Shown: positions 7,573 to 53,960, numbered from the whole stretch's first letter. The stretch is 63,307 bases of DNA, filler included, from Octopus bimaculoides (GCF_001194135.2; 5 parts of 5 records of this genome joined end to end with filler, not necessarily neighbours in it), one strand, 5' to 3'. Numbers and translations are program-made. The notes: a model not told the origin generated them from the letters alone.

Positions 7573-7617
<45 letters not shown>

Positions 7618-7650: not shown

Positions 7651-7739
<89 letters not shown>

Positions 7740-8628: not shown

Positions 8629-8660
<32 letters not shown>

Positions 8661-9738: not shown

Positions 9739-9824
<86 letters not shown>

Positions 9825-9924
9825 GTGTATGTATGTGCATGTATGTGAATATGTAATGTTTGTACGTATGTGTTTATGCATGTATCTGTGTATATAAGTG
9901 CTTTCGTATGCATGTAGGTATGTT

Positions 9925-9963
<39 letters not shown>

Positions 9964-10072
9964 TTGAGCGTATGTATCTATGTGTATGCTTATGCGCATA
10001 TATGAATATTTGTATGTATGTATATATGCTTGTATACATGTATGGGTGTATGTATGTAGAAAAACTGTATTA

Positions 10073-10123
<51 letters not shown>

Positions 10124-10804
10124 NNNNNNNNNNNNNNNNNNNNNNNNNNNNNNNNNNNNNNNNNNNNNNNNNNNNNNNNNNNNNNNNNNNNNNNNNNNNN
10201 NNNNNNNNNNNNNNNNNNNNNNNNNNNNNNNNNNNNNNNNNNNNNNNNNNNNNNNNNNNNNNNNNNNNNNNNNNNNNNNNNNNNNNNNNNNNNNNNNNNN
10301 NNNNNNNNNNNNNNNNNNNNNNNNNNNNNNNNNNNNNNNNNNNNNNNNNNNNNNNNNNNNNNNNNNNNNNNNNNNNNNNNNNNNNNNNNNNNNNNNNNNN
10401 NNNNNNNNNNNNNNNNNNNNNNNNNNNNNNNNNNNNNNNNNNNNNNNNNNNNNNNNNNNNNNNNNNNNNNNNNNNNNNNNNNNNNNNNNNNNNNNNNNNN
10501 NNNNNNNNNNNNNNNNNNNNNNNNNNNNNNNNNNNNNNNNNNNNNNNNNNNNNNNNNNNNNNNNNNNNNNNNNNNNNNNNNNNNNNNNNNNNNNNNNNNN
10601 NNNNNNNNNNNNNNNNNNNNNNNNNNNNNNNNNNNNNNNNNNNNNNNNNNNNNNNNNNNNNNNNNNNNNNNNNNNNNNNNNNNNNNNNNNNNNNNNNNNN
10701 NNNNNNNNNNNNNNNNNNNNNNNNNNNNNNNNNNNNNNNNNNNNNNNNNNNNNNNNNNNNNNNNNNNNNNNNNNNNNNNNNNNNNNNNNNNNNNNNNNNN
10801 NNNN

Positions 10805-10841
<37 letters not shown>

Positions 10842-11751
10842 AGAGACTCCTTCCTAACAGATATGGAAGACTCATAAAACAGAAAAGAGAGTCTATTATT
10901 GCTATTATTTCCTGTATTGGCAGAATTTCTGCTCCATCATCACATTCAGAATTTCAATGAGTCCATCTCCAATCATCAATAATTAACCATTCTACGACAG
11001 AGAACAGACTGATATCAAGTTGAATAAAAGAACGTATGAGTCAGGAACCGGAGTCGGTGTAATCCATTGGCACGTCCCCCTCAATATGGCGGGCCTTGGA
11101 CTCTGCAATGAACTGGCAGCGTCCTGTTCAAGTAGAATGGTGTGCTTTTAGTCAGTTGTACATCATGGAAATTGGGTAAGTGGCCATAGGAGACCCCCTA
11201 GGGGCTATGAAAGCTGAACGACAACAAAGTGAATGCATGAGATCGTTGCGCTGATACTTGCCTGAACGCCGATTAGTATGATGATGGTGATGAGGAGGTG
11301 GAGGAGGAGGAGCGGGAGGGGAGGCGAGGNNNNNNNNNNNNNNNNNNNNNNNNNNNNNNNNNNNNNNNNNNNNNNNNNNNNNNNNNNNNNNNNNNNNNNN
11401 NNNNNNNNNNNNNNNNNNNNNNNNNNNNNNNNNNNNNNNNNNNNNNNNNNNNNNNNNNNNNNNNNNNNNNNNNNNNNNNNNNNNNNNNNNNNNNNNNNNN
11501 NNNNNNNNNNNNNNNNNNNNNNNNNNNNNNNNNNNNNNNNNNNNNNNNNNNNNNNNNNNNNNNNNNNNNNNNNNNNNNNNNNNNNNNNNNNNNNNNNNNN
11601 NNNNNNNNNNNNNNNNNNNNNNNNNNNNNNNNNNNNNNNNNNNNNNNNNNNNNNNNNNNNNNNNNNNNNNNAAAAGAAGAAAGAAAAGCAAGGAAGGAAA
11701 GAAAGAAAAGAGAAAGAAACAAACAAACAAAGGAAAGCAAAGAAGGAGGGA

Positions 11752-11846
<95 letters not shown>

Positions 11847-12044
11847 GTGGCAGTATCAAGTCCCAGCACTCCTTTCTTCAAATTCCCACATCAGGGATCT
11901 ATAATGACCACAATTATGTAATCTACCCCTTTAAAAAAAAAAGGCGTGGGGGTCCCCTAATCACCAACCAGGCCGTGGATCATTTGGTACGGAGCCGCAC
12001 AGAAAGAATACATTTTAGGATTTTATTTCTATCTTATTGACCCC

Positions 12045-12240
12045 CGTGGTGAACTGGCAGAATCATTAGCACTATGAACAAAATTGCTTCATCGTCTGTC
12101 TTTACGTTCTGAGATCAAATTCCGCCACGGCGGACTTTGCTGTTCATCCTTTTGAAGTCGATAAAATAAATACCAGGGTCAATGAATTGACAATCTCTTT
12201 CCCCAAATTTCAGGCCCTGTGTTTATAGTAGAAAAAATTT
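12045..12240 (+). mobile_element. tRNA-SINE family B copy
   Basis: GGTGAACTGGCAGAATCATTAGC...GAGATCAAATTCCGCC. Confidence 0.7.
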
Positions 12241-12829
12241 TATTGACTATCACAGTCTGCAGGGTGTTTTCACATTATATGTGTAATCTTTCTTTTTCCG
12301 CTTCATCTTTTGCTTGTTTCAGTCATTTGACTACGGCTATGCTGGAGCGCTGCCTTGAAGAATTTTAGTCGAGCAATTCGATTCCAGTATGCTTTTCTTT
12401 TCCTTGATACTCTTTAAAAGTTATCTGGATGCATTTCTTTTTTCAGGTGTCATCTAAATTATAAATTTTCTATATATTTCGAGTGAACCACTCATCATCG
12501 GAGTCGCTACTGCTCTAACCTGCTGTTGTCTGTGCTACTACAGCCTCTGTTGGAGCAGCTACTAGTGCGACTGTTTTGTTGCCAACAATCCGTTAACTAT
12601 TTCTCTTCTAATGACGGGCGGCTCGCCTGAAATCATCAATGTTCTCTTCACATTTTAAGAAGCTCTTCGCAGTATTTATTTTAAATATATCTTAATGCTT
12701 CAAGAGAATTTCAACGCTCATAGTTATATGTACATGGCTTGATTAAATGTTTATTTTGAGGTTCAGTAATCACATATGCAGACATACATAAATACCTACG
12801 TACATACGTAGTTATATATGTGTGTGAGT

Positions 12830-13165
12830 GAAGGCGCATGGCTCAGTGGTTGGAGCGTCGAGCTTACGATCGTGAGGTTGTGAGTTCGAATCCCGGACCG
12901 GGCTGCGTGTTGTGATCTTGAACAAGACACTTTATTTCACGTTGCTCCAGTTCACTCAGCTGTAGAAATGAGTTGCGACGTCACAGGTGCCAAGCTCTAT
13001 CGGCCTTTGCCTTTCCCTTGAATAACACTGGTGACGTGGAGAGGAGAGGCTGGTATGCATGGGTGACCACTAGTCTTTCATAAAACAACATTGCCCAGAC
13101 TTGTGCCTGGGAGGGTAACTTTCTCGGTGCAATCTTATGGTCAGTCATGACGGAAGGGGGTCTCA
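12830..13165 (+). mobile_element. tRNA-derived SINE family C
   Basis: GAAGGCGCATGGCTCAGTGGTTGGAGCG...GAGTTCGAATCCCGG head; the body is shared with 3320-3660. Confidence 0.85.
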
Positions 13166-13242
13166 GATATATATGTTTGTGTATGTATGTTTGTATGTAT
13201 GTATTTATGTATGTATGTATGTATGTATGTATGTATGTATGT

Positions 13243-13796
13243 GTTAGCAGAGTAGTACGATCTAAAGTGATCTTGGTACAGGCAGTTTGTTAAACTCAAG
13301 CACATACACGGCTTGTATGGATAACACAATTATGTAACCCAAACATGGATGTATGTATGTTTTTCCATAGAGTTTTATTGAAGTTTTTCTTACAAGAGTT
13401 GAAGCCGATCGCTAGCAAAGCGACAAGGCCTTTGGAGTTAAGAGTGTTCCAGGTGTTTGGAAATCTATCGTTGAGCTGCTGTGTTGTTTGAGCTGTCGAT
13501 GCACACACCTAAGTGTCTGCATCTATTCATGCAATGAATCTCACATGGAGAATCTTTGGAATGTCTTATAAGTCTTCACTGTGCCGCAAATAGATTGGAT
13601 TTGAAGAAGCCGCATGTTTCTTTTGGTCTTTCTTCGAAAAAAACCTAGGATTTCTAGGTTTTTGCGTGACTTTGTATGTACATTGTTTAGTGCCCCTATG
13701 AGGATAGCCACAAGTGAGAATTCATAGTCAGGGTACAAGAACTGCACGTTCCGCTTCAAGTGACCATAAATGTTCTATTTTCCTAGACTTTTGATA
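13243..13796 (-). mobile_element. 5'-truncated R4/Dong-like non-LTR 3' end embedded in a (CATA)n microsatellite
   Basis: 13541-13780 reads NIYGHLKRNVQFLYPDYEFSLVAILIGALNNV...LGF...LLQIQSICGTVKTYKTF, resembling an RLE C-terminus (PxxxGALG). (TATG)n lies on both sides. Confidence 0.65.
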
Positions 13797-13897
13797 CATG
13801 TATGTATGTATGTATGTATGTATACAAGTTGTCACTTTGTAACTTTCAGAATCAATTTTAGTCCCGTAGTAGAGAGATTAGACAGACAGACAGACAC

Positions 13898-13985
<88 letters not shown>

Positions 13986-14025
13986 GGATGGATAGATGGA
14001 TAGATAGATAGATAGATAGATAGAC

Positions 14026-14069
<44 letters not shown>

Positions 14070-14360
14070 TAGATGTTTNNNNNNNNNNNNNNNNNNNNNN
14101 NNNNNNNNNNNNNNNNNNNNNNNNNNNNNNNNNNNNNNNNNNNNNNNNNNNNNNNNNNNNNNNNNNNNNNNNNNNNNNNNNNNNNNNNNNNNNNNNNNNN
14201 NNNNNNNNNNNNNNNNNNNNNNNNNNNNNNNNNNNNNNNNNNNNNNNNNNNNNNNNNNNNNNNNNNNNNNNNNNNNNNNNNNNNNNNNNNNNNNNNNNNN
14301 NNNNNNNNNNNNNNNNNNNNNNNNNNNNNNNNNNNNNNNNNNNNNNNNNNNNNNNNNNNN

Positions 14361-14416
<56 letters not shown>

Positions 14417-14461
14417 TATGTCTGTGCATGTGCATATTTTCATATATTTCCTGGTTGTGCA

Positions 14462-14493
<32 letters not shown>

Positions 14494-14675
14494 CATACGT
14501 ATATGTATGTATGTATGTATATGTGTATAAAATCAATAAGGCAGTAAAAATCCATTGCCATATCTTTGTAATCAATAATTTGTCTATGACAATGAGTTAT
14601 TGATTTAGTCAGTAGCTAATTATCTGTGTTAATTACGTTCTCTTTAATGAGGTGCCGCTGCACTCAATTTTATAA

Positions 14676-14711
<36 letters not shown>

Positions 14712-16323
14712 AACTGCTGTTGCTGCTGAAGCTGTCGGCTGCCGTTGCCTCTGTTAAAGCAATTTCCGCTCTCACTCGCTGCTGTTTCTTACTGTTGCTG
14801 GCCCTATTGGAACCGCTACTACTGCGGCTGCCGCTTGCCACTTGTTCTGTTTCATGTGAATGCTGTTGTTGTTGTTGTTGTGGTGGTGGTGGTGGTGGTG
14901 GTGGTGGTGGTGGTGGTTGTGGTGGTGGTTGTGGTAGTGGTGGTGATGATGATGGTGGTGGTTGTAGTGGTAGTAATGGTGGTAGTGGTGGTGGTAGTGT
15001 TGGTAATGGTGGAAAGGATGAAGATGATGGTAGTGATGCTTGTGTTGGTAGTGATGCTTGTGTTGGTGGTGTTGGTGACAGACAAAAGACACAGTTTCCA
15101 AATGGTGTCTATTATTTTGATACCAATTGCAATGTCGTTCTTGCTATTGAAGAAAACCACGTGTTAAGGTCATCTCTACAGATTTTCCATAGAAATTATA
15201 GCCAGCACTGACTGTTGTTACGACGTTTCGTATCCAAGATGTCAAATATAAACAAACGATGAGATCGAAAATGAAAAATTGGATAATGAGCGTATATGCC
15301 ATACTTCGGGAGTTTTTGCTCCTTCATTACCACCCATTCTAACCCTAATCCTCCACTAACACATTCTTTAAATTNNNNNNNNNNNNNNNNNNNNNNNNNN
15401 NNNNNNNNNNNNNNNNNNNNNNNNNNNNNNNNNNNNNNNNNNNNNNNNNNNNNNNNNNNNNNNNNNNNNNNNNNNNNNNNNNNNNNNNNNNNNNNNNNNN
15501 NNNNNNNNNNNNNNNNNNNNNNNNNNNNNNNNNNNNNNNNNNNNNNNNNNNNNNNNNNNNNNNNNNNNNNNNNNNNNNNNNNNNNNNNNNNNNNNNNNNN
15601 NNNNNNNNNNNNNNNNNNNNNNNNNNNNNNNNNNNNNNNNNNNNNNNNNNNNNNNNNNNNNNNNNNNNNNNNNNNNNNNNNNNNNNNNNNNNNNNNNNNN
15701 NNNNNNNNNNNNNNNNNNNNNNNNNNNNNNNNNNNNNNNNNNNNNNNNNNNNNNNNNNNNNNNNNNNNNNNNNNNNNNNNNNNNNNNNNNNNNNNNNNNN
15801 NNNNNNNNNNNNNNNNNNNNNNNNNNNNNNNNNNNNNNNAACAATTTACATATATGTACCACAAAGTTTATTAAAGTTTTTTGTAAATCAATACCATTTA
15901 CTACTGTGTTAGCAGTGCACTTAAACCACGTGTTAAGGTCCTCTCTGCAGATTTTCCATAGAAATTATAGCCAGCACTGACTGTTGTTGCGACGTTTCGT
16001 ATCCAAGATGTCAAATATAAACAAACGATGAAATCGAAGATGAAAAATTGGATAAAGGGCGTATATGCCATACTTCGGGAGTTTTTGCTCCTTCATTACC
16101 ACCCATTCTAACCCTAATCCTCCACTAACACATTCTTTAAATTGCCACTAAATGCAGCGATGCAACATTATTGGAATTACCAATTTTCATATTAAACACA
16201 TTCCAGGAAATTGGTATGCATATATTCATGATTTGTAGGGGACACGGTATTTCGTTACGCAATCATAATGTACTACAAATACGTGCTAAGGACATCTGTA
16301 GAGATGGTTTTAACACTTGAAAT

Positions 16324-16750
16324 GCGGCGAGCTGGCAGAATCGCTAGCACGCCGGGCGAAATGCTTAGCGGTATTTCGTCTCTCTTTACTTTCTGAGTTC
16401 AAATTCCGCCGACGTCGACTTTGCTTTCATCCTTTCGGGGTCGATAAATTAAGTAGCAGTTACGCACTGGGGTCGATCTAATCGACTTAATCCCTTTGTC
16501 TGTCCTTGTTTGTTGTCCCCTCTATGTTTAGCCCCTTGTGGGCAATAAAGAAATAAGAATTGTTAGCACGCCGGGCGAAATGCTTAGGAGTATTTCGTCT
16601 GTCTTTACGTTCTGAGTTCAAATTCCGCCGAGGTCGACTTTGCCTTTCATCCTTAATAAATTAAGTACCAGTTGCGTACTGAGGTCGATCTAATCGACTA
16701 GCCCCACCTCCCCCAAAAATTTCGGGCCTTGTACCAAGAGAAGAAAAGAT
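16324..16750 (+). mobile_element. Two nested/tandem tRNA-SINE family B copies; the first ends in a hairpin+AATAAAG tail
   Basis: GCGGCGAGCTGGCAGAATCG...TTCTGAGTTCAAATTCCGCC (A/B boxes). The tail GCCC-CTTGT-GGGC-AATAAAGAAAT is at 16531-16554, and the SINE body restarts at AGAAT 16556. Confidence 0.8.
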
Positions 16751-17095
16751 TACTTAATACGTNNNNNNNNNNNNNNNNNNNNNNNNNNNNNNNNNNNNNN
16801 NNNNNNTTAATTAATTAANNNNNNNNNNNNNNNNNNNNNNNNNNNNNNNNNNNNNNNNNNNNAGGAATGTGTAGTGGTGGGATGGACTTATGAGGGAGGG
16901 TTGAGGATGAAGGGAAACGGGAGAAGGAGGTAGGGGAAGGTGCGTATGAGAGAAGAGAGAAAGACAGGAAGAGAGAAGAGAGAAAGAGAGTAGGGGTGAA
17001 GAGAAGTAGGAGTGAAGAGAAGTAGGAATCGGAGCAAGAGAGGAGATGTGGGTGGGAGGAATTAGGGGGACGGGGAGAGAAACAAAGGGAGGAGG

Positions 17096-17350
17096 TTAGA
17101 TGAAGAGGGGAGGAGAGTTGAGCCCATGTGGCGCAAAGAAGCGAAGAGAGAAGATTAATCTCTGTTCACGGCGCAAACGGGAGTCCTGATGGCCCCTGTG
17201 CAAGGACAATCCGAACACGTACAGGTGTTGCAAAGAGTGACCGGTAGAGTGGAAATAGGCATGAGACTGGGGTGTCATTGCTGAGGCCGTTGTCTCGGGG
17301 GTGTTCCGCAAACCGGTCAGCCAAGCGGCATCCCGTTTGTCCGATTGTTT
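17096..17350 (-). pseudogene. Penelope-like element GIY-YIG endonuclease C-terminal fragment
   Basis: IGQTGCRLADRFAEH, then a frameshift, then YFHSTGHSLQHLYVFGL...RLRREQRLIFSLRFFAPHGLN. Confidence 0.8.
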
Positions 17351-19679
17351 ATATTATATATATATATATATATAGGGTGTGCTATGTGAATTTATGGATA
17401 CGTATCCCATAAAACTCAACAAATTTGTTAAAAATGGAGACGAGAAGATATTAAAATAATGTGTGTGTGTGTTTATATATATGTTATGTGAGCGAAATAC
17501 ATTCACGCACACTCGTACACGTGTACACACACACACACACACACGCACATGCAGGAGGAGATGCAGCGCTGGGATGCAGCGCTGGGATGCAGCGCTGGGA
17601 TGCAGCACTGTACTGGAAGTGGAGAATAGGCGATAGCTACATCCAAAATAAAAAGAGGTAGTTGAAGATACATACACACATACAATCTTTGTGAAATGTA
17701 TAACAATTTATTTTTGTCGCTTATTAGTATTTATGTAATTACTTTTGATAGCTTCATGTGATTCCCTACTATAGTTTTAAGACCATTTGAGATGTATGCA
17801 GAATTTTTTTTCATCACTCTGAGGTTTGGTTTGTTATTTCTGGCACTATCTTACTCTTTCCTCACAGTATCTCTTTCCTGTGATTTTTAGTGATGAATAT
17901 GTTTTGCATGCGCTGAGTGATTGTGATTACTGACGTGTCTTTCAGTGTCAGCCGGTGTAAATGAACCCACTAAGACTAGTTCGATCTCCTATATTTGTTT
18001 GAGAACAAAAGTTTAATTGTTAGAATATACAAGAGAAGTTGGAACATCAGGAAATGTTTCCAAATATTTTAAATTTTTGTTTCATAATTTCAAAATATAA
18101 TATTTTCCACATGTTTTAACATTTCATGTTAAAAAATAAATATTGTTTTATATTTTAAAGATTCTGGGAAAATATCTTTTATTTGTTATTTTGGTTGAAT
18201 TGCTTCTTATTTATTTTGCTACTTTTTCTTCATTTTAAATTTGTAACTAAAATTTGGAAACAAGCAAAATTACTGATTCTAACAATTCGATAAAATGGAA
18301 TCCCGATAGTCAAGAATCACGTTTTTATGACAAATAGGTTTCAGTGTTGTAATTTCTTTTAAAAAAATCGTTATCAATAGCAACATATTGATTATCGCGG
18401 TCTCAGAAAATGATAATGAATAAAAATAAAAAATACATTTAACAATGTTTTTGTGCATAAGATGGGAGCCAGTAAATTTGTTTTCTCTTTTCGAGGCATT
18501 GAAATTTCGAAGTTTAGAATGGAATATTTCTAAGACGAAAGTAGAATAGCGATGATTACACGAGAGATAAATAGAGCAAGAATTTTAGAATGAGGCAATA
18601 TTTTATTTTGTAATTTTTCTCTTCTATTTTGTATGTGTAAGCGATACTATTTTGTTTTGTAATTTATGGTAAAAATGTTCAGCAATACAATACGATCCCC
18701 AACGGTGGATTCATGCTCGGGATTGAATATGAATGTCAGTATTTCTTTTCAATAACGAATGTTAACAGGAAATCAATGAGCGTTGTGCTTGTTTTCACAA
18801 CAATTCACCTCAACGGACTTTTAAAATGTTAAAGAGTTAGTTTTTCCTCACATTAAATTCACAGACGACGTATGAAACAATTTTCAAAAAAACTCAATTT
18901 ATTTTGTGTTGAATAAGATCAATAAGCTTCTTTAAAACCTCTTTCATTAAATGGATCGAAATTATAACCTTTTAGGGGCCTCAGTCTTTGTCTCCCAAAC
19001 CCAAATTATTGATATATCTATGCATCAAGGAATTTGAACAAAGTATTTCTGAAATTTTCATTTATAGTACAGTATGTAAATCCTAGCTTTTTCTCACGGA
19101 TTCATGTTCTCGTTCATTTACTTATCCATCCATGTCTTTCTAAACACAATTTTTTACGCTTATTTTAAGAGTGCTATTTTTACGTTTTACTTAAAAGAAA
19201 GAAGGGAGACGCTCAAAACCCTTTATTTTTGAAGCACCCCAAATCTGGTGAGAGAGAAGAAGGAAGTTGTTCTCAAACCAGAAAACTGGCGCCAAAGACT
19301 TCAGCAGTATAACATCGCCATGTATTTATCATACTATGTGTATACATACCTCTAGAAAGCATGATGCTGTGAAAATGCCTGCTATAAAATCTCTTCGTTG
19401 ACTTGTTTTAAAAACACGATTCATATACTAGCACGAGAGAAACATTGTCATTACGTGTTTTGTCTTTGAGCTTTGGGAATTCAGTACGCTCGAGTGTCAC
19501 CTGCTTAAACAACATTCATACCTCGATATATAGGAATGAGTAAATAAAACATTAATTGCTGCTATAGAAGATTGCCAAGCTGTGAAAGACTTCGGTGTAA
19601 GCAATTGAAGCAACTTTAAATTAAAGCCACTATCTACTTATCATACTTAATGTATACATACTGTTGAAAGGCATGTCTT

Positions 19680-28253: not shown

Positions 28254-28924
28254 TATACATAGTACATACATACTTACATATCGATAAAGGGTAGGTAAGA
28301 GAGGGAGAGAGAGGCAAGAGCCGTCTTTGTATCAGAGCTAATACTTTGGCGCAGCATCAGGATAGGAGTTTTAGCTTGATCGACATTTTTAAACAACTAA
28401 AGAATAGGCCAATCAATGGATTAGAATCACAGTAACGATATTCATTGGTCTATTGATTACTCTCCTGTTTTTAACAAGACAAACACATAAAAAAAAATGT
28501 TTATATGATTTGAAAGATATCTGACATGATTACAGTAAGTCCGAATATAAATCTAAAATGTATAATGAAAAGCAACACACACATATATGTGTATGTATGT
28601 GTATATGTATATATATTTAATTATATATATATATAATATATATATATANNNNNNNNNNNNNNNNNNNNNNNNNNNNNNNNNNNNNNNNNNNNTTAATTAA
28701 TTAANNNNNNNNNNNNNNNNNNNNNNNNNNNNNNNNNNNNNNNNNNNNTTTTTTTTTTTTTTTTTTTTTTTTTTCCTTCCTTCCCCCTCCCAAAAAGAAA
28801 AGCTCTACATTGTATTTGTCCCATCTTCGTTGAGCCCTGTGTGGCTAATAAAAGAAATGTATCTACCTAACTGTCTGCCTACCTCTCTATCTACCTATCG
28901 ATCTATCTCTGTTATCTATCTTTC

Positions 28925-28960
<36 letters not shown>

Positions 28961-29085
28961 TTATCTATCTGTTTATCTATCTATCTATTTGTCTACCTGT
29001 CTATCTATTTATCTGTTTGTCTGTCTGTCTGTCTATCTATGTATCACAGTTTCTCTTTCTGTCTCTGTGTTTATATATATATGTT

Positions 29086-32781: not shown

Positions 32782-33706
32782 CACACATACACGTTCGTTT
32801 CGGTTATTTGTCTGTGGCTATGCTGGAGCACCGCTTTGAAGGGTTTTGGTCCAAAAATCGTTCCCAGTACATATTTTTCTGTTAACCAAGTACTTATTCT
32901 ATCGCTTTATTTTGCCGAACCGCTATATTACGGGGATGGAAACACACCAACTCCATTGTCAATCAGTGATGGAAGGACAAACACAGCCACAGAAACCACA
33001 CACACACACACACACACACACACNNNNNNNNNNNNNNNNNNNNNNNNNNNNNNNNNNNNNNNNNNNNNNNNNNNNNNNNNNNNNNNNNNNNNNNNNNNNN
33101 NNNNNNNNNNNNNNNNNNNNNNNNNNNNNNNNNNNNNNNNNNNNNNNNNNNNNNNNNNNNNNNNNNNNNNNNNNNNNNNNNNNNNNNNNNNNNNNNNNNN
33201 NNNNNNNNNNNNNNNNNNNNNNNNNNNNNNNNNNNNNNNNNNNNNNNNNNNNNNNNNNNNNNNNNNNNNNNNNNNNNNNNNNNNNNNNNNNNNNNNNNNN
33301 NNNNNNNNNNNNNNNNNNNNNNNNNNNNNNNNNNNNNNNNNNNNNNNNNNNNNNNNNNNNNNNNNNNNNNNNNNNNNNNNNNNNNNNNNNNNNNNNNNNN
33401 NNNNNNNNNNNNNNNNNNNNNNNNNNNNNNNNNNNNNNNNNNNNNNNNNNNNNNNNNNNNNNNNNNNNNNNNNNNNNNCACATATATATATATATCAGTA
33501 TACTGATACTCATATATATATGCATATATATACTTGTATGTGTGCACACACACATATATATATATATATACACGACACGCTTCTTTCAGTTTCCGTCTAC
33601 CAAATCGACTCACAAGCCTTTAGTTGACCCGAGGCTATAGTAGAAGGCCAAGGTGCCACGCCGTGTCACTGTATCCGGAACTATGCAGCTTTGTAGCAAG
33701 CTTCTT

Positions 33707-35890
33707 TATTTCATAAAAATTGGCCATAAAGGCCTCACAGAAAAAGGGAAGCTGCGGGCTAGACATAGACATAATGTTATGTGAATGAAAAAATGATGAC
33801 TAATGAATAAATGGGGGGGGCACAAGCAGCGCCCGCCGACTGTCTGATACCCGAAAACATTGTTCTCGTATATATGAGACGACAAGCCTCTTACACTGTT
33901 CGTAATGTTCATTGATACAAAAAGGAGGCATTACGCCTCTTACTTTGTTTAAACTAAATGAGGTTTCAAACCTCTCCTCCATTCATAACATTCAGGTTTT
34001 TCAACTTTTTATCCATATTCCTCCCCAGCATCGCTTGTGACCACATCTTTCGCCATCGCCCACGCCTCATTTAAGCACAAAGCAGGTGACGTGTCGGCGT
34101 CGCCCGGTCACAAGCGATACTCCTCATTAAGCCCCTCCAACCTACGCAACACGGACATCGTTATGACCTCCACAGTTATCTGCGGAGGCCATACGGGATC
34201 ACTTGTATAGGTCAAAGTTGCTCCCTTCTGGTGCTTTTCCAGCACCTCCTCTACCTCTCCGCCTCTGTAGAAGAAGACCGATAATTCCTCTTCCTCCGGG
34301 GACGAGGTAGCCACTTCCGCACTCGTCGGCACAATTTCCACCGACGGTGGCTCCTCCCCCGCCAGTGGTACGACTCCCACCGACGAAGTTCCGGGACATT
34401 CCGGTACTATGTCAATGACTGCCGGCAATGTCCCGTTTCTCTTCCTCTTCCTTTTTTTTCTTCTCAACTGAGAGAAAGTGCGTCTCCTGCGTGGCCGGGA
34501 GATTCACCTCCCCTCCTTCATCCCTAGGATCCTTCGGTGAGCAACCATTGTTGCTCACTTTCTTCCTCTTGCGGCTCTTCTTTGAGGAATCCTCCTCCTC
34601 CTCGGCCGCTTTTGTTCCCTCTTCCACAGCGGTCTCAACCAACTGCACCAGGACTTTACTTTGTCCCGGGGAACAGTTTTTCTTTATATGGCCTGGCTCC
34701 AGGCACCGATGACACCTGGGGGTGGTGACCCTCAAGAATCACTGGATACCTCAAACCGGCCATTTTCAAGAAATCCGGAAATACCACATTTTTGGCTGAT
34801 TGGGTCTACAGGTTTAAAACCGCCTTTGACCCAACCCAATCAGCCGCAGACAAAATTTTAACATTTATGAGCTTAGCTCCGCTGCCACCCAGACCCCGGC
34901 AGATAGTGACTTTTATCTACTCGGGTTCTATTCCGGGTGGCAAACTGCCGACTCAAGCCCTTGTCAATTTTTTCCCACAATACGTGGGAAGAAACAATAT
35001 TTCGTCGCCCTCTAAGGGCTGACTCGCACAATTGCGAGCTTCTTCAGGGGTTTCAAATAGCACACACTTCGCCAACTCTCTTTCAATTACATTCTTTTCG
35101 AATAGGGCGATGGTGTCGAGTGACTTAGAGTAAGTCCTCAACACCACCGTCCTCTTTTCGAAGTCTTTCAACCACTGTTTTAGTGGGACAATTTCCCACA
35201 CCAAAACATTGTCCTTGTTCTTTTTTTTTTTAATAAAAGTCCACAAACAGTTCAGAAGGAAATCAAAAGAAGGTCTCAACAAAAAGGAAGGAAGAAAAAA
35301 TGAAAACAGTTCAATAAAGAAAGTCACAAGAAGAAGAAAAGAAAACAACAGTTCAAAAAAAAAACACAGCAAAAAATCTTCTGGACACTCGGTAATCCAG
35401 GCCTATTTGGTACTCCAACTTGGACCCGGAACGCCACAACTTGGAAGACAACTTTCACAAAGTTTGGTAAAAAGAAGTTGTGGTATCTTCTAAATTTTCA
35501 TAATTTTTGAAACAAAACTATTCACTAAAAGTGAACAAATTTTGGACGCGAAATACGCCTCAACAATTATCACAATTAAGTGAGAAAAAAACTATTCACT
35601 TAACGTGAACAAATTTTTCGAAGCGGGATACGACCCCAAACACAAATTCTCACAATTAAGTGAATAAAACTTTTCACTTAAAGTGAACAAATTCTGCCCA
35701 ACTTCAGGCAGACCAGTGTACAGAATCCAGTGGGGACTCCTTGCTTGTACAAAAATATTACAAACAACAAACCACCACTGGACCCAAACTACAAAAAGTC
35801 TTACCTTGCAGTTGAGCTTAACTTAATTCGCCACGCTACTTAGCGTGGCCTAACCGCCTTCAGCGTTTCGACTGACAATACGCATGCGCG
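33707..35890 (-). mobile_element. ORF1-only (half-L1/HAL1-like) Tx1/L1-type non-LTR element 1, inserted in a tRNA-SINE head
   Basis: Bounded by AGCAAGCTTCTT at 33695-33706 and within 35891-35907. The 5' end is CGCGCATGCG and the 3' end is GGCC-TTTAT-GGCC...AAATAAAG. It carries a gag-like ORF1 remnant with a CCHC knuckle; no EN/RT motifs are seen in 2.2 kb. Confidence 0.8.
33990..35210 (-). pseudogene. Disrupted ORF1/gag-like protein of element 1 (RRM-like region + CX2CX4HX4C knuckle + acidic/basic tail)
   Basis: Reads ...ILFLPTYCGKKLTRA*VGSLPPGIEPE*IKV...ILEG/PRCHRCLEPGHIKKNC, with in-frame stops and frameshifts. Aligns by eye with element 2 ORF1 (LLPTYLGRKTSKVRVEGISPDIEVAWI). Both ends are approximate. 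Confidence 0.8.
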
Positions 35891-35907
35891 TGGGAAGCAA
35901 GCTTCTT

Positions 35908-37390
35908 TATTTAAATATTTTTGCCATAAAGGCATTGCACGGAGGGGACACTACAACACATGTAGAGACATATAACAATTAAAAATATAAAAACAAAATA
36001 TGATATAATGAATGATACATGAAAATGCACGTGAACAACAAATTAAAAATATGATAATATGAATGATATCTGAAAATGATATTATGAAGAGTGTGCTACT
36101 CACCCCACACTGAGTAACACCACTCGCTGCCTCTGAGTCCTAAATCCTTTTTTATTTCAGTTCAAACTTTTTCCTCTTTCTCCATCACTTAATGACATCG
36201 TTCTCTCTTCCATGCATTCATAACCTTTTTCACCGGGAGGTAGGGGGGGTCTTCTAAATTTTGTGATATCTGTTCTTTCTTTTTCTTTTTTTCCTGTGGG
36301 GAAATGGGGTGGGTGGGTTTGGTATCTGTATGGAGAGGGTGGGTCTGAGTGGTCTTGGGTGGGATGGAGTAGGGCTGGGGTACCACATCATACTCAGTAT
36401 CTTTTCTTTTTCTCCTTCTGCTCTCTGTAACTTTCCATTCTTCCTCCTTTTTCTCCTTTCCTCCGTCTGTCTTTTCTTCCTCTCTTTTCTCTTCCGTCTC
36501 CACAACTGCATCCTCAGCCATTGTCCTTTGTTGAGGGCAGTATGCTCTAATGTGGCCCTTTTGACCACATTTAAACAACGTGGTGCTCTGCCCTCTACCC
36601 ATACTCCCAATACTATTTCTCCCAACGTCACTCTCTCCGCCAAATTTTCTAACTGTTTCGCCTCCGATTGTGTGATAATCTCCAATTTTTTCCCTTTAAA
36701 TCCTCCTTCCACCGTGTCTGTGGCTTGGAGGACAGCCACCGCCTCCTCACTTCCAACGAGGACGGCTGCCGCTATCCAAGCCACTTCTATATCGGGTGAA
36801 ATTCCTTCTACCCTCACCTTAGAAGTCTTTCTTCCTAGGTACGTGGGTAGAAGTAATAGTTCCTTCGTTTTAATAGTTGTGCTCGCCAGCTTCTTCGCCT
36901 CCTCCGCTGTCCTAAACTGGACAACCACCGTCCCATATCCATTTCCTTTGGCTATATACGTCACTTCCTTCGAAAGCCCCTTCAGGGCTTTTTCTACTTT
37001 TTCCATCTCGATCCGCTCCACCTTCCTTTTCTCCACTGCGTACACCTTGTAGGTGATGGTCTTTTTTTCCATAACCCTTTTCGGGGTAATAACTTTACAT
37101 CACCGCCCACCTTCTGTGTCATGTTACACAGCTTCTTCAATCCGGTTAGGTCCACTTCCTTTTTCTTCGTCTCTGCAGCTTCAGCAAAACTCTTTACTTT
37201 TTCCAAATGCTCATCCATTCTATTTACCGCCTTAACGACCTCCTCCTCCGCTGAGGACAGCTCATACTCGCTAAGGTCCGAATACACTCCTTTCTACCGG
37301 TAAAACTCACCGACAAACCGCTGCCAAGCAGCTCAAAAAATTCCGTAGGTCTCGTCAAAAATCAACACAGCGAATACACCGGCGCATGCG
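35908..37390 (-). mobile_element. ORF1-only Tx1/L1-type non-LTR element 2, in tandem with element 1
   Basis: Flanked by a 17-bp TSD TGGGAAGCAAG(C/G)TTCTT at 35891-35907 and 37391-37407 (16/17 identical). The 5' end is CGCATGCGCC and the 3' end is TGCC-TTTAT-GGCA...AAATAAAG. No ORF2. Confidence 0.82.
36189..37218 (-). pseudogene. Near-intact ORF1/gag-like protein of element 2 (two frameshifts)
   Basis: ORF-track pieces 36994-37287, 36254-37072 and 36189-36602 join into MDEHLEKV...VVVQFRTAEEAKKL...LGRKTSKVRVEGISP...WVEGRAPRC/FKCGQKGHIRAYC..., with a 1-nt deletion at the knuckle. Confidence 0.82.
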
Positions 37391-40169
37391 TGGGAAGCAA
37401 GGTTCTTACCACACAGTCGTGCCTGCGCCATCTATACTTACATATCATTAAACTAATACAACTGTTTTTGGTCCTCTCATCTAACTTCATCTTTTGTTTC
37501 TGTAAACTATATATAATTATATATGTATATATATATATATATATATNNNNNNNNNNNNNNNNNNNNNNNNNNNNNNNNNNNNNNNNNNNNNNNNNNNNNN
37601 NNNNNNNNNNNNNNNNNNNNNNNNNNNNNNNNNNNNNNNNNNNNNNNNNNNNNNNNNNNNNNNNNNNNNNNNNTTTAAATTTGGGTATACACCTTGTAGT
37701 ATGGTGTTTAAAGCCGTTAACTGTAATCAGGTTCCCGATGTCGTCAACACTATGGATCTAAATACCACTGGATTTACTTCAGGAATTTCTTTGTGTCCGT
37801 CGAGTATATAACATACTAGCAGCTGAGCCCGGTTTCACCTGGTCAGAAAACGACGCGAAGAGAGAAACGAAGACATAAAAAAGAGGAAGAAGTGGATACG
37901 AAGTTGTGTTTGGGCGACGGGTCTTGGTAGAAAAAAAAGAATGTCATGGAGAGTTAGTAAGGAGAGCAAAGCAAGACTGGACTTACGTGGGCTGGCAGGA
38001 CGATGAAAAATTTGCGGAGTTGAAATTGAACAGGCGGTAGTAATTAAATATCATGCCCTTGTATGTGTGTGTGTGGGAGGGGGCAAGGGGGAAACCTAGG
38101 GGACAGCCTCGCGGCTGTGATGCTCTACAAATATTTGAGGTGCATTATTCGGTGCAAATGTGTCTCCGCCAGTACTTGTCAAAAGTTACTTCGTCTTTAA
38201 TCTCCGTTTCGCTTATTTCGACTAGGATATATATTTGGGTAGTTGTCGTTTGCTACTCGTATACACGAAAACTGTATTCTAATTGAAATAAGATAAACAG
38301 AAATTTCAGAAAAAAACGAGATACTTTTTGAAATGTCACCTGACGAGAAACGTCCTCACCGAATAATGCACCTCAGCTGTCCCTACAGCATCTCAGCCAC
38401 GAGGCACCGATGCACGATGGGTCGAAATCATCGTAGTGAATAATAGTCTAGTGAATTCCATTTTCTTTTCCTTGTGATATTCAACTATTTCCCTGATATT
38501 TATGACTATATACACACACACCCTGTGTTATACACACCGTGTGTTTTCTCTTGTATCATTATGTGCTTTGTAGAATGATACATTAAGGAGCGTTTTTAAT
38601 GACTACCTCCGGATTATTGAATCCATATATTGTAGCTTATATATATATACACACATGTATATATATATATACATACATACATACATATGCGAGGTGTCCA
38701 TAGCCTATCTTTACATTTTTGGCAATTTCTTGCATCTATTTCGAGCATGGTATTTAAATACTCCTGCCTGTTCAAACATAAATTTCGAACAATGATAATC
38801 TATTTTCGGATAAAAAAATGTTATTTGTGTATTAAGGCTACTATCGGTTTCATGTTAAGGGATACATTCACAATTATCATGCCTATTACATGGAAATATT
38901 ATATATTATAGTTTGACTCAGCTCCAAGTGGCTTAAAGTTTCGGGGGCACATGTGTTGAACCTATCGCATCAGATATCATGAGAAAGATAAAAGATGTGA
39001 GACAAATTCAAGAATGCTTCTGGATGTTAGGCCTCTGTTGGTCAACTTAGCACTTAATGCTCTGGAAGTAACAAATGTTGTTTTCGTTATTCGTAGGCCC
39101 ACTTGCTCGGACAATATGTTGACATGAAGCTATTTCTACTTTTCCGAAAAGATGTGGTATCGCATATCCAATGTTTTTAGCTCAGTCGTCTTTCAATGGA
39201 GTATGAACCTCTACACCACATTCTGTAATCTATGAGGATTCTGTCATTCAAAGATTTGTTTATACAACCCCACTCTCCACATCTGATAGGATCGCAAGAC
39301 ACAACACAGGCATAACAGCCGATGATATTTAAGGGAAATTATAAACAGTACACCCCTTTGAGTGCTGGGGTAGAAAAAAATTCCACCTCCCTGTCCCACT
39401 TCATTTTGTGATTCAGCAAACACCGGAACAACTTCTCCAATATCAAATGGAGAATCAATGATAATCTTCACTCGTAATTGGTCTTCACTCGCATTGACAA
39501 CTCCGTCTCCGCGCGAGATTCCACATACTCTACCAACCTGCAGTATCCATCAACAGGAATATACTATCTTCAGAAGAATGTCCTGTTGATGAACTTCAAG
39601 CCATTGATATCCGATAATCCAAATATACTACCCTAGGTTGCCTCCACCCACAAACACACATACAAAGGCATGATATTTAATTACTCCCGCCTGTTCAAAC
39701 TACAGCCCCACCCATGTTGATTATCCAGCCTCAACTTTAACTTAACATCATTAGTCTAATTACTACCGCGTAACGGCTTCTGCCATTAATGTGTGGCACC
39801 GATTACAATGAACGGCTATCGGGCTGTCGCTGAATACGATATGCCATAGCTTGTCGCCAAAGTAGCAACAGTTCCATGCCAACATCATAGCCGCCAAAAT
39901 AGCAACAGTTCTATATCAACAACCTGGGCCTAAGAATAAAGAAAAGAACAGGTGTCACTTACACAGCATGAACACTTAACACTACTAGAAGCCTAAAATC
40001 CAAAAGCCATCTTGAGTTTGTCTCAAATTCGTTCTCTCCTCATATCTGATGGTACCAGTGCCTGTTCTAGCGGTCGAGTGTAAATTAATGACTAGACCAA
40101 ATACGGTCGATACCACGTGAACTGGTGGTCTCGGCACTGGATGTAGCGTAGATTTATCTACTCGCAAGC

Positions 40170-45019: not shown

Positions 45020-48000
45020 AATGGCATAGACTAAAACCTAAACATAAACCTAACTATAACCCTAACCATAGCTCTAACCCTAACACTAAACCTAACGCTA
45101 ACCCTACCCCTAAACCAACCCTTAAGCCTAACCCTCACTCTAATCCTGACCTTGACCCTGCCCCTAGCCCTTAACCTAGCATTAATACTAACAATATCCC
45201 TAAACCTAAACCTCACATACCCCTATCACTAACCCTAACACTAATACTAGCCCTAAACCAAATACAAGCCCTAGCCCTATATCTAACCCTAACACTAAAC
45301 CTAACACTAACAATAGCCCTAAATATAAATCTAACCCTAACGCTAACCATAACACGAACTTAACCCTACACCTAATCATAAACTTAACGTAATCCCTAAC
45401 TCTGAACTTAAACCTAACCGTAACCCTAACACTAAATATAACCCTAAACCTAACGCCAACCCTAAACCTAAACCTAACCCAAAACTAAACCCTAACCGTA
45501 AAACTAACCCTAACCCTAATCCTAAAACTAACCCTAACCATATCCCTAACCCTAAAACTAACACTATCTGTAACTCTAAATTTAATGGTAACACTATTCC
45601 TAACAGAAACCTTAACATTAATCCCAAACTTAATCCTAGACCTAATCCTTACCCTAATCCTAGACCTAAACCTAACACTAACCCAGAACATAACACCAAC
45701 CCAAAACCTAACCCTAACACTAACACTAACCCTAACACTAAACCTAAAGCTAATACTAACTCTAACACTAACACACTCCCTAACCCTAACCCTAGACGTA
45801 AACCTAACGCTAAACTTAAACCTAACCCTACCGCTAACCCCAAACCTATCCCTCATCCTTACCCTCACACGAAACTTAAACCTAACCCTAACACTAAACC
45901 TAACCTTAACACTAACACTAACCCTAATCCTAACCATAACACTAACATTAACCCTAACCTAAAGATAACACAAGACCTAAACCTAACCCTGACTTTAACC
46001 CGAACCATAACACTAACCCTAATCCTAACCCTAACCCTAAACCTAACCATGACCCTAACCCTAACCCTAAACCTAACAATAACACTAACACTAACACTAA
46101 AACTCACCCTAACCTTAAAGCTAACGCTAAAACTAACCTAACACTAAAACCAAACCTAACCTTAACCCTAACTCTAACCCTAAACCTAACTCTAACCCAC
46201 AGCTTAAAACTAAATCCAACAAAAGCACTAACCCTAACTCTGACCCTCACCCTAACACTGACTCTATCCCTATCCCTAACCTTAGCCCTAAAATTAACCC
46301 TAACCCTAAACCTAACCCTAACTAACCCTAAGCCTCGACCTCACCCTAACTCGAAAATCAGCCCAAACCCTAACCCTAACGCTAACTCTAATCTTAACCC
46401 TATCCCCAACACTAAAACCTAAACACAAACCTAACTCTAACCCTAACCATAACTATAACCCTAACACTAAACCTAACGCTAACCCTACTCCTAAACCAAA
46501 CCTTAAACCTAACCCTCACTCTAATCCTGACCTTGACCCTGCCCCTAGCCCTAAACCTAGCATTAATACTAACAATACCCCTAAATCTAAACCTCACATA
46601 CCCCTAACACTAACCCTAACACTAACCCTAAACCTAAACACAAAACCCCAACCCTAACCTCAAGCCAACTCTAAATCTAACATAAGCATAGCCCTAACCC
46701 CAAACCTAATACTAAACTGAATCCTAGCCCTAACACAAAATCTAACCCTGACCCAAAAGAAACTCTAACGATAACCCTAACACTAAAGCCGTCCCTAACC
46801 CTAAACGTAACACTAACCCGACCCCTAACACGAACCGTAAACCTAACCCCAACCTTAAACATAAAACTAACCTTAACGATAACACCAAACCTAACCCAAA
46901 CTCTAACACTCAATCCCACATTAAACCTGACCCTAACACTAAACATAAACCTAGACCTAACTCTAAAACCAACCTTAACCTTAACCCGAAGCCTAAACCT
47001 AGCGCTAATCCTAGCACTGACCCTATCCCTAACCCTAAACTCAACACTAAACCTAACCAAAACCATAAAACTAAATCACCCTAAACCTAACCCTAAACAA
47101 ACACTAACCCTACCTATAACCCTAACACTAACCCTTATCCTAAACCTAGCCATAAACCTAATCTTCACCCTAAACCTAACATTAACGCTTGAAATAAACC
47201 TAACCATAACTCTAACCCTAACCCTATACGTAACCTTAAACCAAACCCTAATCCTAGCACTAAAATTAACCTTAACACTAAACCTAAACTTAACCCTAAC
47301 CCTAACCCGAACCCGAACTATAAAACTAACTACAATCCAAACACTAAACCCAACCCCAAACCTGAAAATTTGCCTAACCCTAACACTAAACCTAAATGTA
47401 ACCATAACCATAACACTAACACTAGCCCTAAACCTAAACCTAACGCTAACACTAACATTAACACTAAACCTAAACATAGACCTAAACCTAACACTAACCC
47501 TAACCCTAACCCTACGCCTAACTATAAACCTAACCCGAACCCTAATTCTAAACATAACCCTATCCGTAACCCTAACACTAAACATAAACCTAACCCTAAC
47601 TCTAAACCTAAACCTCGCATTAACTTTAATCCTAACAATAAATCCGACCCTAAACCTATCCCTAACGCTAACACTGACCATAACTATAACACTAAACCTA
47701 ACCCTAACCCTGACCCTCATCCTAACCCACACACTAACCCCAAACCTAACGCTACACATAAACCTAGACCTAACCCTAGCCGTAAACTTAACATTAACAT
47801 TAAACTTAACTCTAAACCTAACGAGAAACATAAAGCCAACCCTAATCCTAAATTTAATCATAACCATAACACTAACCCTAATCCTAAATGTAACCCTAAC
47901 TATATCCCTAACCTTAACACTAACACTATCTGAAACCCTAACCTTAACTATAACAGTGCCCCTAACACAAACCCTAACACTAATCCCAGCCTTCATCCTA

Positions 48001-48945
48001 GACCTCAAAACTTACCCTAACTGTAACACTAGACCTAAACCTAACTCTAACGCTAAAACTAACCCTAAACCTAGACATAACACTCACCCTAATCCTAAAC
48101 CTAACTCTAAACCTAACTGTAACCCTAAGTCTAATAATAACACTAACCCGAAACATAACCCTAAACCTAACTCTATCCCTACACATAAACCTAACCCTGC
48201 CACTAGCCACAAACCTAACTGTAACCTTAACCCTAACCCTAAACCTNNNNNNNNNNTAAACCTAACTCTATCCCTACACATAAACCTAACCCTGCCACTA
48301 GCCACAAACCTAACTGTAACCTTAACCCTAACCCTAAACCTAACTCTAATCATAACCCTAAACCTAACACCAACCCTAAACGTAAAACTAGCCCTAACAC
48401 TAAACCGAAATCTAACACTCACCCTTACCCTAAGCCTTACCCTAACCATTACACAAAATCTACCCTAACACTAACCCCAAAAGTAATCATAAACCTACCC
48501 TTAAACCTAAACCTAACATAAAACCTAACCCTTAGCCTAACCCTGACGCTAACCTTATCCTTAGCCCTAAACCTAGCCCTAAACCTAACCCTAACCCTAA
48601 TCTAAAGCCTACGCTTAACACTAACATCAAACCTAACACTAACACTAAAACTAACCTAAAACTTAACCCTAACCCCAAACCTAACGCTAAGCCTAACCCT
48701 AACCCTAACCTTAAACCTAACCCTATCACTAAATCTAACCCTAACCCTAACCCTAACAATAACCCTAACACTAACACTAACCTTAACCCTACATCTAACC
48801 CTAACTCTCAACCTAACCTAACCTAAGCCTAACACTACGCCTAACTCTAAACCTAACCCAAACACTAACCCTAACCCTAAACCTAACACTAAAACTAATC
48901 ATAACCCTAACACTAACGATAAAACTGAAACAAACCCTAAATATA
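45020..48945 (+). repeat. Interstitial degenerate telomere-like (CCCTAA)n array, ~3.9 kb
   Basis: Hexamer variants CCCTAA/CACTAA/CCTAAA/CCTTAA throughout; the internal block 45030-45240 recurs at 46412-46620. Confidence 0.9.
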
Positions 48946-53259: not shown

Positions 53260-53960
53260 GCCAGGAGTTTTAGAAGAGATAAACCGATTACATCGACCCA
53301 GTGCTCAGCTGGTACTTATTTTCAACCTGAAATAAATGAAAAGTCAATCTCGGGTGGAATTTGAACTCAGAACGTAAGGACGGACAAAATGCTGCTAAAC
53401 CCAGCATGACAACGATTCTGCGAGCTCGCCGCTTTATTTACAAAAGAATAAGTACGCCTGATGCTCAACCAATTCTGCCAACTCACTGCTAGTTAGTATT
53501 AATATTAATTTCAAATTTTGACACGTGGCAATCATGTTCGGGGAAGAAGACAAGTCGATTAAACTGATCCCAGTCTTAAAGCAAAGTCGACCTCAGTGGA
53601 ATTAGAGCTGAGAACGTGAAGACGGGCCAAATGCCGATAAGCATTTTGCCTGGCGTGCTATCGATTCTGTCAGCTCGCCGCCCTAATTAGTAATAATATT
53701 AAAACAGCCTGTCAGAGGTCGCTTCGCTTAATGATACAGAGCGTTCAGCCGGTATCTGAGAGTTACAGGGTTCGATTCTCTGTAGCCGCCTGCTGAAAAC
53801 TGTAGAGCAGGCGGAGAGCTGTCAGAATCGTTAGCTCGCCTGGCAAAATGATCAGCGGTATTCTGCTTGTATTTACGTTCTGAATTCAAATTCCGCCGAT
53901 GTCAACTTTGTCTTTCATCCTTTTCGGGTAGATAAAATAAGTACCAGTTGAGCACTTACG
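53260..53960. mobile_element. Cluster of three family B SINE copies (two on -, one on +)
   Basis: Repeated GGAATTTGAACTCAGAACGT (-) and GAGCTGTCAGAATCGTTAGC...GAATTCAAATTCCGCC (+). Confidence 0.75.

Follow-up and report, generated by a model that had tools for sequence, protein, structure and literature searches.

Within a 63,307-nt window of the Octopus bimaculoides genome (GCF_001194135.2; parts of five records joined end to end with filler), we analyzed a 26-kb piece and found two different retroelements, denoted E1 and E2, stacked at one site in the head of a short interspersed nuclear element (SINE). Each retains the first open reading frame (ORF1) of a long interspersed nuclear element (LINE) and no second frame (ORF2). 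Relatives in other octopus genomes use the same or a similar site, and this reuse speaks against an accidental stack and for a small parasite that exploits L1/Tx1-type retrotransposons and inserts site-specifically. We consider it probable that E1 and E2 are diverged, ORF1-only, nonautonomous families that stem from an octopod superfamily of L1-group LINEs and insert site-specifically into SINE heads.

The SINE, denoted SINE-A, is split on the minus strand after base 22, one base beyond a motif resembling an A box. E2 (1483 bp) and E1 (2184 bp) lie in tandem within it, both on the minus strand and in the orientation of the SINE. The original prediction had described two different ORF1-only elements of these lengths, in SINE orientation and delimited by three target copies, and on re-checking all of its coordinates for the stack were correct. 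Along the minus strand, the order is SINE head, copy 1, E2, copy 2, E1, copy 3, SINE remainder, and a (TA)n tract, composed of the following features:

37408–37429, minus strand: SINE-A head, consensus positions 1–22, with the A-box-like motif at 11–21 (blastn to the SINE consensus; A-box scan).
37391–37407, minus strand: target copy 1, AAGAACCTTGCTTCCCA, SINE positions 23–39 (motif search; SINE consensus alignment).
35908–37390, minus strand: element E2, 1483 bp, ORF1-only (ORF1 homologs P0001–P0003; ORF2 similarity absent).
36189–37287, minus strand: E2 ORF1 in three frame pieces, 36994–37287, ∼36539–37072, and 36189–36581 (homologs; fold of P0014).
35908–35954, minus strand: E2 3′ tail module, ..GTGTCCCC..TGCCTTTATGGCA..AAATA (tail alignment; nhmmer E 1.9e-4; hairpin pair counts).
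35891–35907, minus strand: target copy 2, AAGAAGCTTGCTTCCCA, between E2 and E1 (motif search).
33707–35890, minus strand: element E1, 2184 bp, ORF1-only, 5′ end CGCGCATGCG.. (60% amino acid and 69% nucleotide identity to P0014/L005 of O. sinensis).
35508–35693, minus strand: tandem repeat in the E1 5′ untranslated region (UTR), 78 bp × 2.4 (repeat search).
34108–35222, minus strand: E1 ORF1 remnants, ∼34953–35222, 34412–34735 (with the CCHC knuckle CHRCLEPGHIKKNC), and 34108–34467 (C-terminal part).
33707–33750, minus strand: E1 3′ tail module, ..GGCCTTTATGGCC..GAAATA (tail alignment; nhmmer E 5.6e-4).
33695–33706, minus strand: target copy 3, AAGAAGCTTGCT, the beginning of the SINE remainder (motif search).
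33566–33694, minus strand: SINE-A remainder (∼35–170: B-box region, body, and tail), then the (TA)n tract (81% identity to the consensus over 23–170).

Three copies of AAGAAGCTTGCT(TCCCA) bound the two elements; the chance expectation for such copies is 0.01–0.07, and two to three are seen. If one mismatch is allowed, the 12-mer AGCAAGCTTCTT is present in three copies (33695–33706, 35896–35907, and 37396–37407; 0.07 expected), a count reached in none of 100 shuffles; if two mismatches are allowed, the 17-mer TGGGAAGCAAGCTTCTT is present in two (35891–35907 and 37391–37407; 0.01 expected). The inserts delimited in this way span 33707–35890 (2184 bp) and 35908–37390 (1483 bp). The copies on either side of E2 are identical at 16 of 17 bases, and the one downstream from E1 agrees over 12 nt; because both element ends resemble the target, the duplication in the window could measure 12, 17, or up to ∼25 nt. 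Self-BLAST of the 26-kb piece that holds the stack revealed no further copy of SINE-A, E1, or E2. Farther along the window, ∼7.6 kb away from the stack, is an interstitial telomere-like tract, a degenerate 3.9-kb CCTAAC array (45037–48917; 64% matches) complementary to the TTAGGG telomere repeat.

For comparison, we retrieved ∼20 kb of DNA around each of seven members of the ORF1 family, together with two short Logan contigs. Site-specific insertion finds support in five loci from three Octopus species and in the two Logan contigs. A SINE-A consensus was taken as a lead and was validated by intact copies in the retrieved Octopus loci, which match it at 90%–96% (96% at L006 20001–19832). Consensus positions 1–39 align to window positions 37429–37391 and positions 23–170 to 33706–33566; the SINE is therefore split between positions 22 and 23 with a 17-nt overlap. 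Taking the inserts out restores a whole SINE-A, and empty sites are visible in intact SINE copies of other loci. The possibility that the SINE head is itself part of the element was ruled out, as removal of the insert yields a complete SINE at the two loci that have both junctions. The A-box-like motif, TGGCTGTGTGG, matches TRGCNNAGTGG at 10 of 11 bases and occupies SINE-A positions 11–21, one base before the break; a B-box-like motif (8 of 11) is found near position 53–54 of an intact copy, and the insert sits between the two. Octopus SINEs have been classed as tRNA-Core/tRNA-Deu (PMC8967140). An Rfam scan of the piece returned low-complexity matches only.

Similarity to endonuclease or reverse transcriptase (RT) was absent from E1, E2, and the rest of the 26-kb piece, both in tblastn searches with ORF2 probes (E ≤ 10) and in the list of reading frames, as had been claimed for the two elements. 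E2 has a 103-nt 5′ UTR, an ORF1 of ∼330 codons with two frameshifts and a start codon that now reads GTG, and a 281-nt 3′ UTR. Its ORF1 is laid out as a helical N-terminus, two RRM-like domains, a CCHC knuckle, and a K/E-rich tail; the knuckle (FKCGQKGHIRAYC) has lost its first Cys at the second frameshift, the relatives having CFKCGQKGH. E1 is more decayed: three in-frame stops and two or more frameshifts interrupt its ORF1, whose first RRM also has a deletion. Downstream from the RRM/knuckle part, E1 has a C-terminal extension and a 3′ UTR. The two ORF1s proved homologous yet divergent, as predicted, sharing 30% identity over 220 amino acids (E 4e-12) and the combination of RRM-like and CCHC parts. 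A frameshift-bridged translation of ORF1 served as a search query only. Because E1 and E2 lack the ORF2 that their full-length relatives have, they are derivatives and not autonomous members.

We searched a representative library of 1.8 billion proteins with an ORF1 profile and found 751 proteins at E ≤ 0.001, of which 206 reached E ≤ 1e-10. A species was named for 15 of the 30 members looked up, and all 15 are octopod: 14 come from the genus Octopus (O. vulgaris, O. sinensis, or O. bimaculoides) and the remaining one from Argonauta hians. Word-indexed protein searches gave three to four matches per run with alignments dominated by low-complexity tails, and a metagenome scan with ORF1 found unrelated zinc knuckles only. 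The AlphaFold model of P0014, an ORF1 of the E1 family, has a mean predicted local distance difference test score (pLDDT) of 81, and its best PDB matches are the tandem-RRM proteins SFPQ/NONO and hnRNP A1 UP1. The CCHC knuckle that follows the RRM-like domains is weak as zf-CCHC in Pfam and clear in profile-to-PDB matches; a profile search of PDB sequences returned CCHC knuckles as its sole matches. The ORF1 of the E1/E2 family is accordingly a type I ORF1p, defined by one or more RRM domains and a CCHC zinc knuckle and tied in animals to the Tx1 branch of L1-like elements (PMC5203782).

Purifying selection acted on ORF1. Between E1 and the O. sinensis locus L005, the nonsynonymous and synonymous divergences (dN and dS) are 0.23 and 0.93, a dN/dS of 0.25 over 255 codons; between E2 and a second O. 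sinensis locus, L009, the corresponding proportions of differing sites (pN and pS) are 0.36 and 0.76.

Public gene models P0001, P0003, P0040, and P0065 join ORF1 to host exons or other transposons, the fusion partners being a Cys-loop receptor N-terminus, C2H2 zinc fingers, LDL-receptor repeats, and Helitron/PIF1, and two members are named "EPM2A-interacting 1-like" (P0006) and "ABC transporter F family member 4-like" (P0025). These fusion models and names are probably annotation artifacts. In a Pfam scan of ten long family proteins, no RT was detected; one was a Helitron/PIF1 chimera, and others were gene-model chimeras. Many longer members (P0004, P0036, P0090, P0011, P0035, P0032, and P0102) bear a C-terminal motif, ..L[KR]xxFPxDVG.., behind a K/E-rich linker; the motif has no Pfam match, and a remnant of that extension is present in E1 at 34108–34467.

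The retrieved loci provided further insertions into SINE heads. L005 carries an ORF1 of the E1 family (69% nucleotide and 60% amino acid identity to E1) that has lost its 3′ part. Its 5′ junction lies in another SINE-A copy with the same break as in the window, GGTAAGTAGCTTGCTTCC/TGTGCATGCG (a slash marks the break here and below), the upstream SINE-A head ending in ..GGCATGGCTGTGTGGTAAGTAGCTTGCTTCC directly before TGTGCATGCG. The outer flanks are unrelated, and L005 is therefore an independent insertion. At L005 11520–11560, ..CTGTGTAGGGTTCA is followed by a second GCGCGCATGCGC palindrome. This motif resembles an NRF1 site and is also present where E1 and E2 begin; a further element could start here.

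L009 holds a relative of E2 (ORF1 44% identical), 1598 bp long, with an intact 384-amino-acid ORF1 and no ORF2. Its host is a second SINE family, SINE-B: the element interrupts the SINE-B head in the sense direction, and a clean 19-nt target-site duplication (TSD), CAGAAAYGTTAGCACGCCG, flanks it. Removing the element restores SINE-B, and the site is empty in many intact SINE-B copies. In the window itself, three SINE-B copies (53291–53956) have uninterrupted heads, that is, empty sites. The L005 junction and the L009 TSD support the earlier claim that elements entered a SINE head one after the other at a single nucleotide position, with a target copy left behind each time. E2 and L009 also share a layout: a 5′ UTR of 103 and 117 nt, then ORF1, and a 3′ UTR of 281 and 326 nt, respectively, for totals of 1483 and 1598 bp.

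The SINE-A and SINE-B sites share the core /NAGAARC, with the break one base before AGAARC (GGT/AAGAAGC in SINE-A and TGG/CAGAAAC in SINE-B), and the AGAA-containing motif common to both also matches the elements' own 3′ terminus (..AATAAAGAA). The prediction had supposed that an enzyme cuts SINE A boxes; in SINE-A the break does fall one base after the A-box-like motif, but this does not hold in SINE-B, and the feature shared by the two is the AGAA motif. A site directly behind the A box is accordingly not a general rule, the SINE-B site not being placed likewise relative to the A-box candidate. L007, a 5-kb contig, has at least three ORF1-only units head-to-tail, including units of 1.4–1.8 kb, and in L010 (O. 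bimaculoides) an E2-like element is followed at once by the 5′ end of another ORF1 family, with a short repeat at both 5′ borders. The same ORF1-only architecture thus recurs in several diverged copies, namely E2, L009, and the L007 units.

Full-length relatives tie these elements to L1-group LINEs. L006 (O. vulgaris OX597840.1) contains, at 4440–19200, three head-to-tail copies of a 5.28-kb LINE that are 99%–100% identical and have an ORF1 of the E1/E2 family; their ORF2 has Exo_endo_phos (APE endonuclease), RVT_1, and zf-RVT domains, with human L1 ORF2p as the best solved match (2e-71). The L006 copies are separated by CTGATAA and CCCGATA, the upstream flank ends in ..AACCCGACA, and the third copy enters an assembly gap. 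L011 (O. sinensis) has a full-length LINE with (ATT)n on either side, and L012 (O. bimaculoides) has two in tandem, each preceded by the 19-mer TTTTTCAAACAGCTGGTCG, which lies in another repeat; the ORF2 at both loci is similar to that of L006. Given the type I ORF1, the L1-like ORF2 of the relatives, and published repeat annotation, the superfamily most likely belongs to the Tx1 clade; L1-Tx1 is the L1-group class in the annotation of octopus repeats (PMC13282606, PMC8967140). PDB entries of L1 endonuclease chimeras were tried as a discriminator and fail to separate Tx1 from L1.

A profile of the last 45–60 nt defines a 3′ module, TTGTCCC..TCTATGT..CCYTTNTGG..AATAAAGAAA(T), that ties E1 (E 6e-4) and E2 (E 2e-4) to the full-length LINEs; its 4-bp hairpin has modest covariation support. 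An ORF2-bearing element sharing the 3′ end had been proposed, and the module itself is indeed present in full-length LINEs, but its CCTTTATGG subtype (CCTTTATGG..AAATAAAGAA) is in none of them; it was seen in E1, E2, L009, and the tail L007a, whose body is out of view. Another tail family, ..GCCCCYTGTGGGYAATAAAGAAAT, meets SINE-B at T[TA]GGTA[TC]TT in three junctions, two sense and one antisense (L013 14355–14400; L010 9572–9530, minus strand; L009 6121–6170). The junction in L013 belongs to an element with ORF1 and ORF2, and that in L010 to a copy truncated to 75 nt and flanked by a duplication of 17 nt, GGTATTTAACCYAGCT.

Stacks were present in five of the 10 loci (the window and nine retrieved), namely the window, L006, L007, L010, and L012, and three of the clean junctions have 17- to 19-nt TSDs or repeated target copies. 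The superfamily is target-specific, its subfamilies differ in target, and stacking is recurrent. Two further observations concern its tails. At window 28815–28857 (plus strand), the tail of another LINE of the superfamily (nhmmer E 8e-4) abuts a (TATC)n microsatellite (28860–29045); the body of this LINE lies beyond the end of the piece, and it may represent a microsatellite-targeting sister family. The SINE-B 3′ region, CATCCTTTCGGGGTCGATAAATTAA (e.g., L009 11150–11174 and window 53907–53940), bears a weak, nonsignificant likeness to the tail module (nhmmer E 3–6), and SINE-B itself might be mobilized by the LINE superfamily to which E1 and E2 belong.

How the site is recognized could be read differently. 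It is possible, though in our judgment unlikely, that the specificity is real and arises from base pairing between element RNA and target, or from tethering to factors of RNA polymerase III (Pol III), rather than from sequence reading by an endonuclease. In the pairing version, the 3′ terminus ..AATAAAGAA or a read-through target copy would pair with AGAA sites, and the 5′ junction would be resolved by SINE homology that the element carries. Consistent with this, all tails end in ..AATAAAGAAA(T), and the AAGAA at the 3′ junctions of E1 and E2 can be assigned to either tail or target; AATAAA spans those junctions, so that transcripts would enter the target copy; and TTCC(CA)YGYGCATGCG, resembling SINE positions 35–48, occurs at three independent 5′ junctions. 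However, the AAAGAAAT terminus is common to other subfamilies, whose insertions are at (ATT)n, TTGGTATTT, and TTTTTCAAAC. As these are quite different sequences, five bases of pairing cannot alone set the site. Tethering is countered by the tail family that uses GGTAYTT in both orientations of SINE-B. RNA–target pairing may still explain part of the specificity, beside the endonuclease. Since all tails end in ..AATAAAGAA, the element itself may supply the AAGAA of the 3′ junction, which would then be a microhomology usable for priming.

A second alternative, which we regard as improbable, sees in E1 and E2 no propagating ORF1-only lineages but dead copies of ordinary full-length LINEs, each of which lost ORF2 separately by internal deletion. 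Deleted LINE copies are common, and L010 has an internally deleted E2-like copy. Against this, E2 and L009 match in architecture and size at only 44% ORF1 identity, the L009 ORF1 is intact, L007 supplies further ORF1-only units of 1.4–1.8 kb, no ORF2 remnant was found at E ≤ 10, and dN/dS is 0.25. We argue that elements with ORF1 alone multiply in that form and depend on this frame, because E2 and L009 share an architecture at 56% protein divergence, the L009 frame is intact, ORF2 remnants are missing, and the low dN/dS points to constraint. Finally, chance nesting of nonspecific insertions, or a draft-assembly mis-join of two SINE insertions, might be suspected from the N runs at the edges of contig 33479–37546 and from the elements overlapping only through a 17- to 27-nt repeat, but either is very unlikely given two base-identical 3′ junctions in equal orientation, a junction that recurs in another species, stacks in chromosome-level assemblies (L006, L010, and L012), and a 17-nt overlap too short for usual assembly k-mers.

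Several points weigh against site-specific ORF1-only families as the explanation. The stack lies on a 4-kb contig (33479–37546) between assembly gaps, and its third target copy matches over 12 nt only. Insertions at SINE heads number four events; L005 comes without a 3′ junction, and the L009 event is in the other SINE, at a site that does not follow the A-box candidate as in SINE-A. Neither ARAGORN nor the Rfam tRNA model detected a tRNA in the window or in intact copies of either SINE head. As all three SINE-A 5′ junctions have TTCC(CA)YGYGCATGCG in common, similar to SINE positions 35–48, part of the "duplication" could travel with the element as a transduced or homology-resolved 5′ end. 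Among the retrieved loci, no full-length element has an CCTTTATGG-type tail or lies in SINE-A. The notion of a "half-Tx1" system therefore fared unevenly: ORF1-only derivatives of L1/Tx1 type and a target-specific superfamily are borne out, and no ORF2-bearing partner with an E1/E2-type tail or a SINE-A site was found.

With site-specific ORF1-only families as the preferred reading, we propose the following course of events. Each element would be transcribed from its own 5′ end and make a type I ORF1 protein. Its RNA would be copied in trans by the endonuclease and RT of a full-length relative, recognized through the shared 3′ tail (a short hairpin, then AATAAAGAA). AATAAA spans the 3′ junctions of E1 and E2, and transcripts therefore probably run into the downstream target copy. 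Integration would be target-primed and site-specific: the lower strand of the SINE head would be nicked at or next to the AGAA motif (GGT/AAGAAGC in SINE-A), where the 3′ end of the element RNA could pair, and a second cut ∼17–19 nt downstream would create the long target duplication. Since this duplication leaves the site intact again on the upstream side of the insert, another element could use it later. E1 would have come first and E2 then gone into the upstream target copy, giving the head-to-tail stack; this order, the one originally suggested, is the simplest and fits the 16-of-17 identity of the E2 target pair and the less damaged E2 ORF. In this course of events, mobilization in trans, the enzyme responsible, the role of RNA–target pairing, and the promoter are inferred.

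Tx1-clade LINEs with specific targets include Tx1L (Tx1D), Keno (U2), Mutsu (5S), Dewa (tRNA arrays), Kibi/Koshi (microsatellites), and Tx1-Mar (Mariner-N4_AMi) (Kojima and Fujiwara 2004; PMC4494074), and Tx1 families are known to target other transposons and to stack (PMC4494074). The octopus elements resemble them in the L1-group ORF2 of their relatives, the type I ORF1, a defined site within a repeat, stacked copies, and sister families that differ in target, including microsatellites and other transposons. They depart from them in that the target of E1 and E2 is a SINE head, of which no description was met with, that E1 and E2 have no ORF2, and that the duplications of the superfamily are long (17–19 nt).

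The HAL1 (half-L1) elements of mammals, as summarized in a later account, kept ORF1, lost ORF2, and propagate as nonautonomous families (Bao and Jurka 2010, cited in PMC4494074). E1 and E2 are likewise LINE derivatives that retain ORF1 without ORF2. HAL1 has a type II (Transposase_22) ORF1, a poly(A) end, and no known site specificity, unlike E1 and E2 with their type I ORF1, specific tail module, and targeted insertion. Crocodilian SINEU elements share the target site of Tx1 LINEs (Tx1-Mar) and are stacked with them, and the 5′ ends of some Tx1 families contain sequence derived from the target (PMC4494074). E1 and E2 are similarly nonautonomous and stacked, but SINEU are short and noncoding with small nuclear RNA (snRNA) heads, whereas E1 and E2 are coding and 1.5–2.2 kb long.

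A functional likeness, and only that, exists to HeT-A/TART of Drosophila, in which an element with Gag/ORF1 alone relies on the RT of another and head-to-tail arrays form in one orientation; those elements belong to the Jockey clade and are added to chromosome ends without target duplication, not in SINEs. Dictyostelium TRE5/TRE3 and yeast Ty3 insert at set distances outside the gene via Pol III factors, unlike E1 and E2, which are inserted inside the head at a defined sequence and have one sister family in both orientations. Dada DNA transposons have been grouped with elements that target tRNA genes (PMC3706591). Common to TRE5/TRE3, Ty3, Dada, and the octopus elements is an association with Pol III-type (A/B box) sequences as a "safe" multicopy target.

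In its working, the system resembles Tx1-type LINEs with specific targets that carry ORF1-only passengers akin to HAL1. Every component of the system has precedent; the combination of a SINE-head target, selected ORF1-only elements, and tail sharing was not found in the papers searched. A bolder reading, which we hold only as a doubtful extension, is that selected, long-lived octopod ORF1-only lineages form a second parasitic layer on Tx1-like LINEs, aimed at the promoter heads of the most abundant SINEs in the genome. Each insertion would disable a competitor, since it splits the A and B boxes, and recreate a landing site, with ORF1p or the RNA ends perhaps helping to choose the site beside the endonuclease of the partner.

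Site-specific LINEs are models for safe-site choice by retroelements and starting points for targeted gene insertion. E1 and E2 unite Tx1-style specificity, a HAL1-like loss of ORF2 with ORF1 under selection, and a target in SINE heads, three known properties of which no joint description was found. With the polymerase supplied in trans, they also make the contribution of ORF1p open to a test in nature. Octopus genomes are unusually rich in SINEs, and elements of the E1/E2 type could affect both SINE activity and local genome structure.

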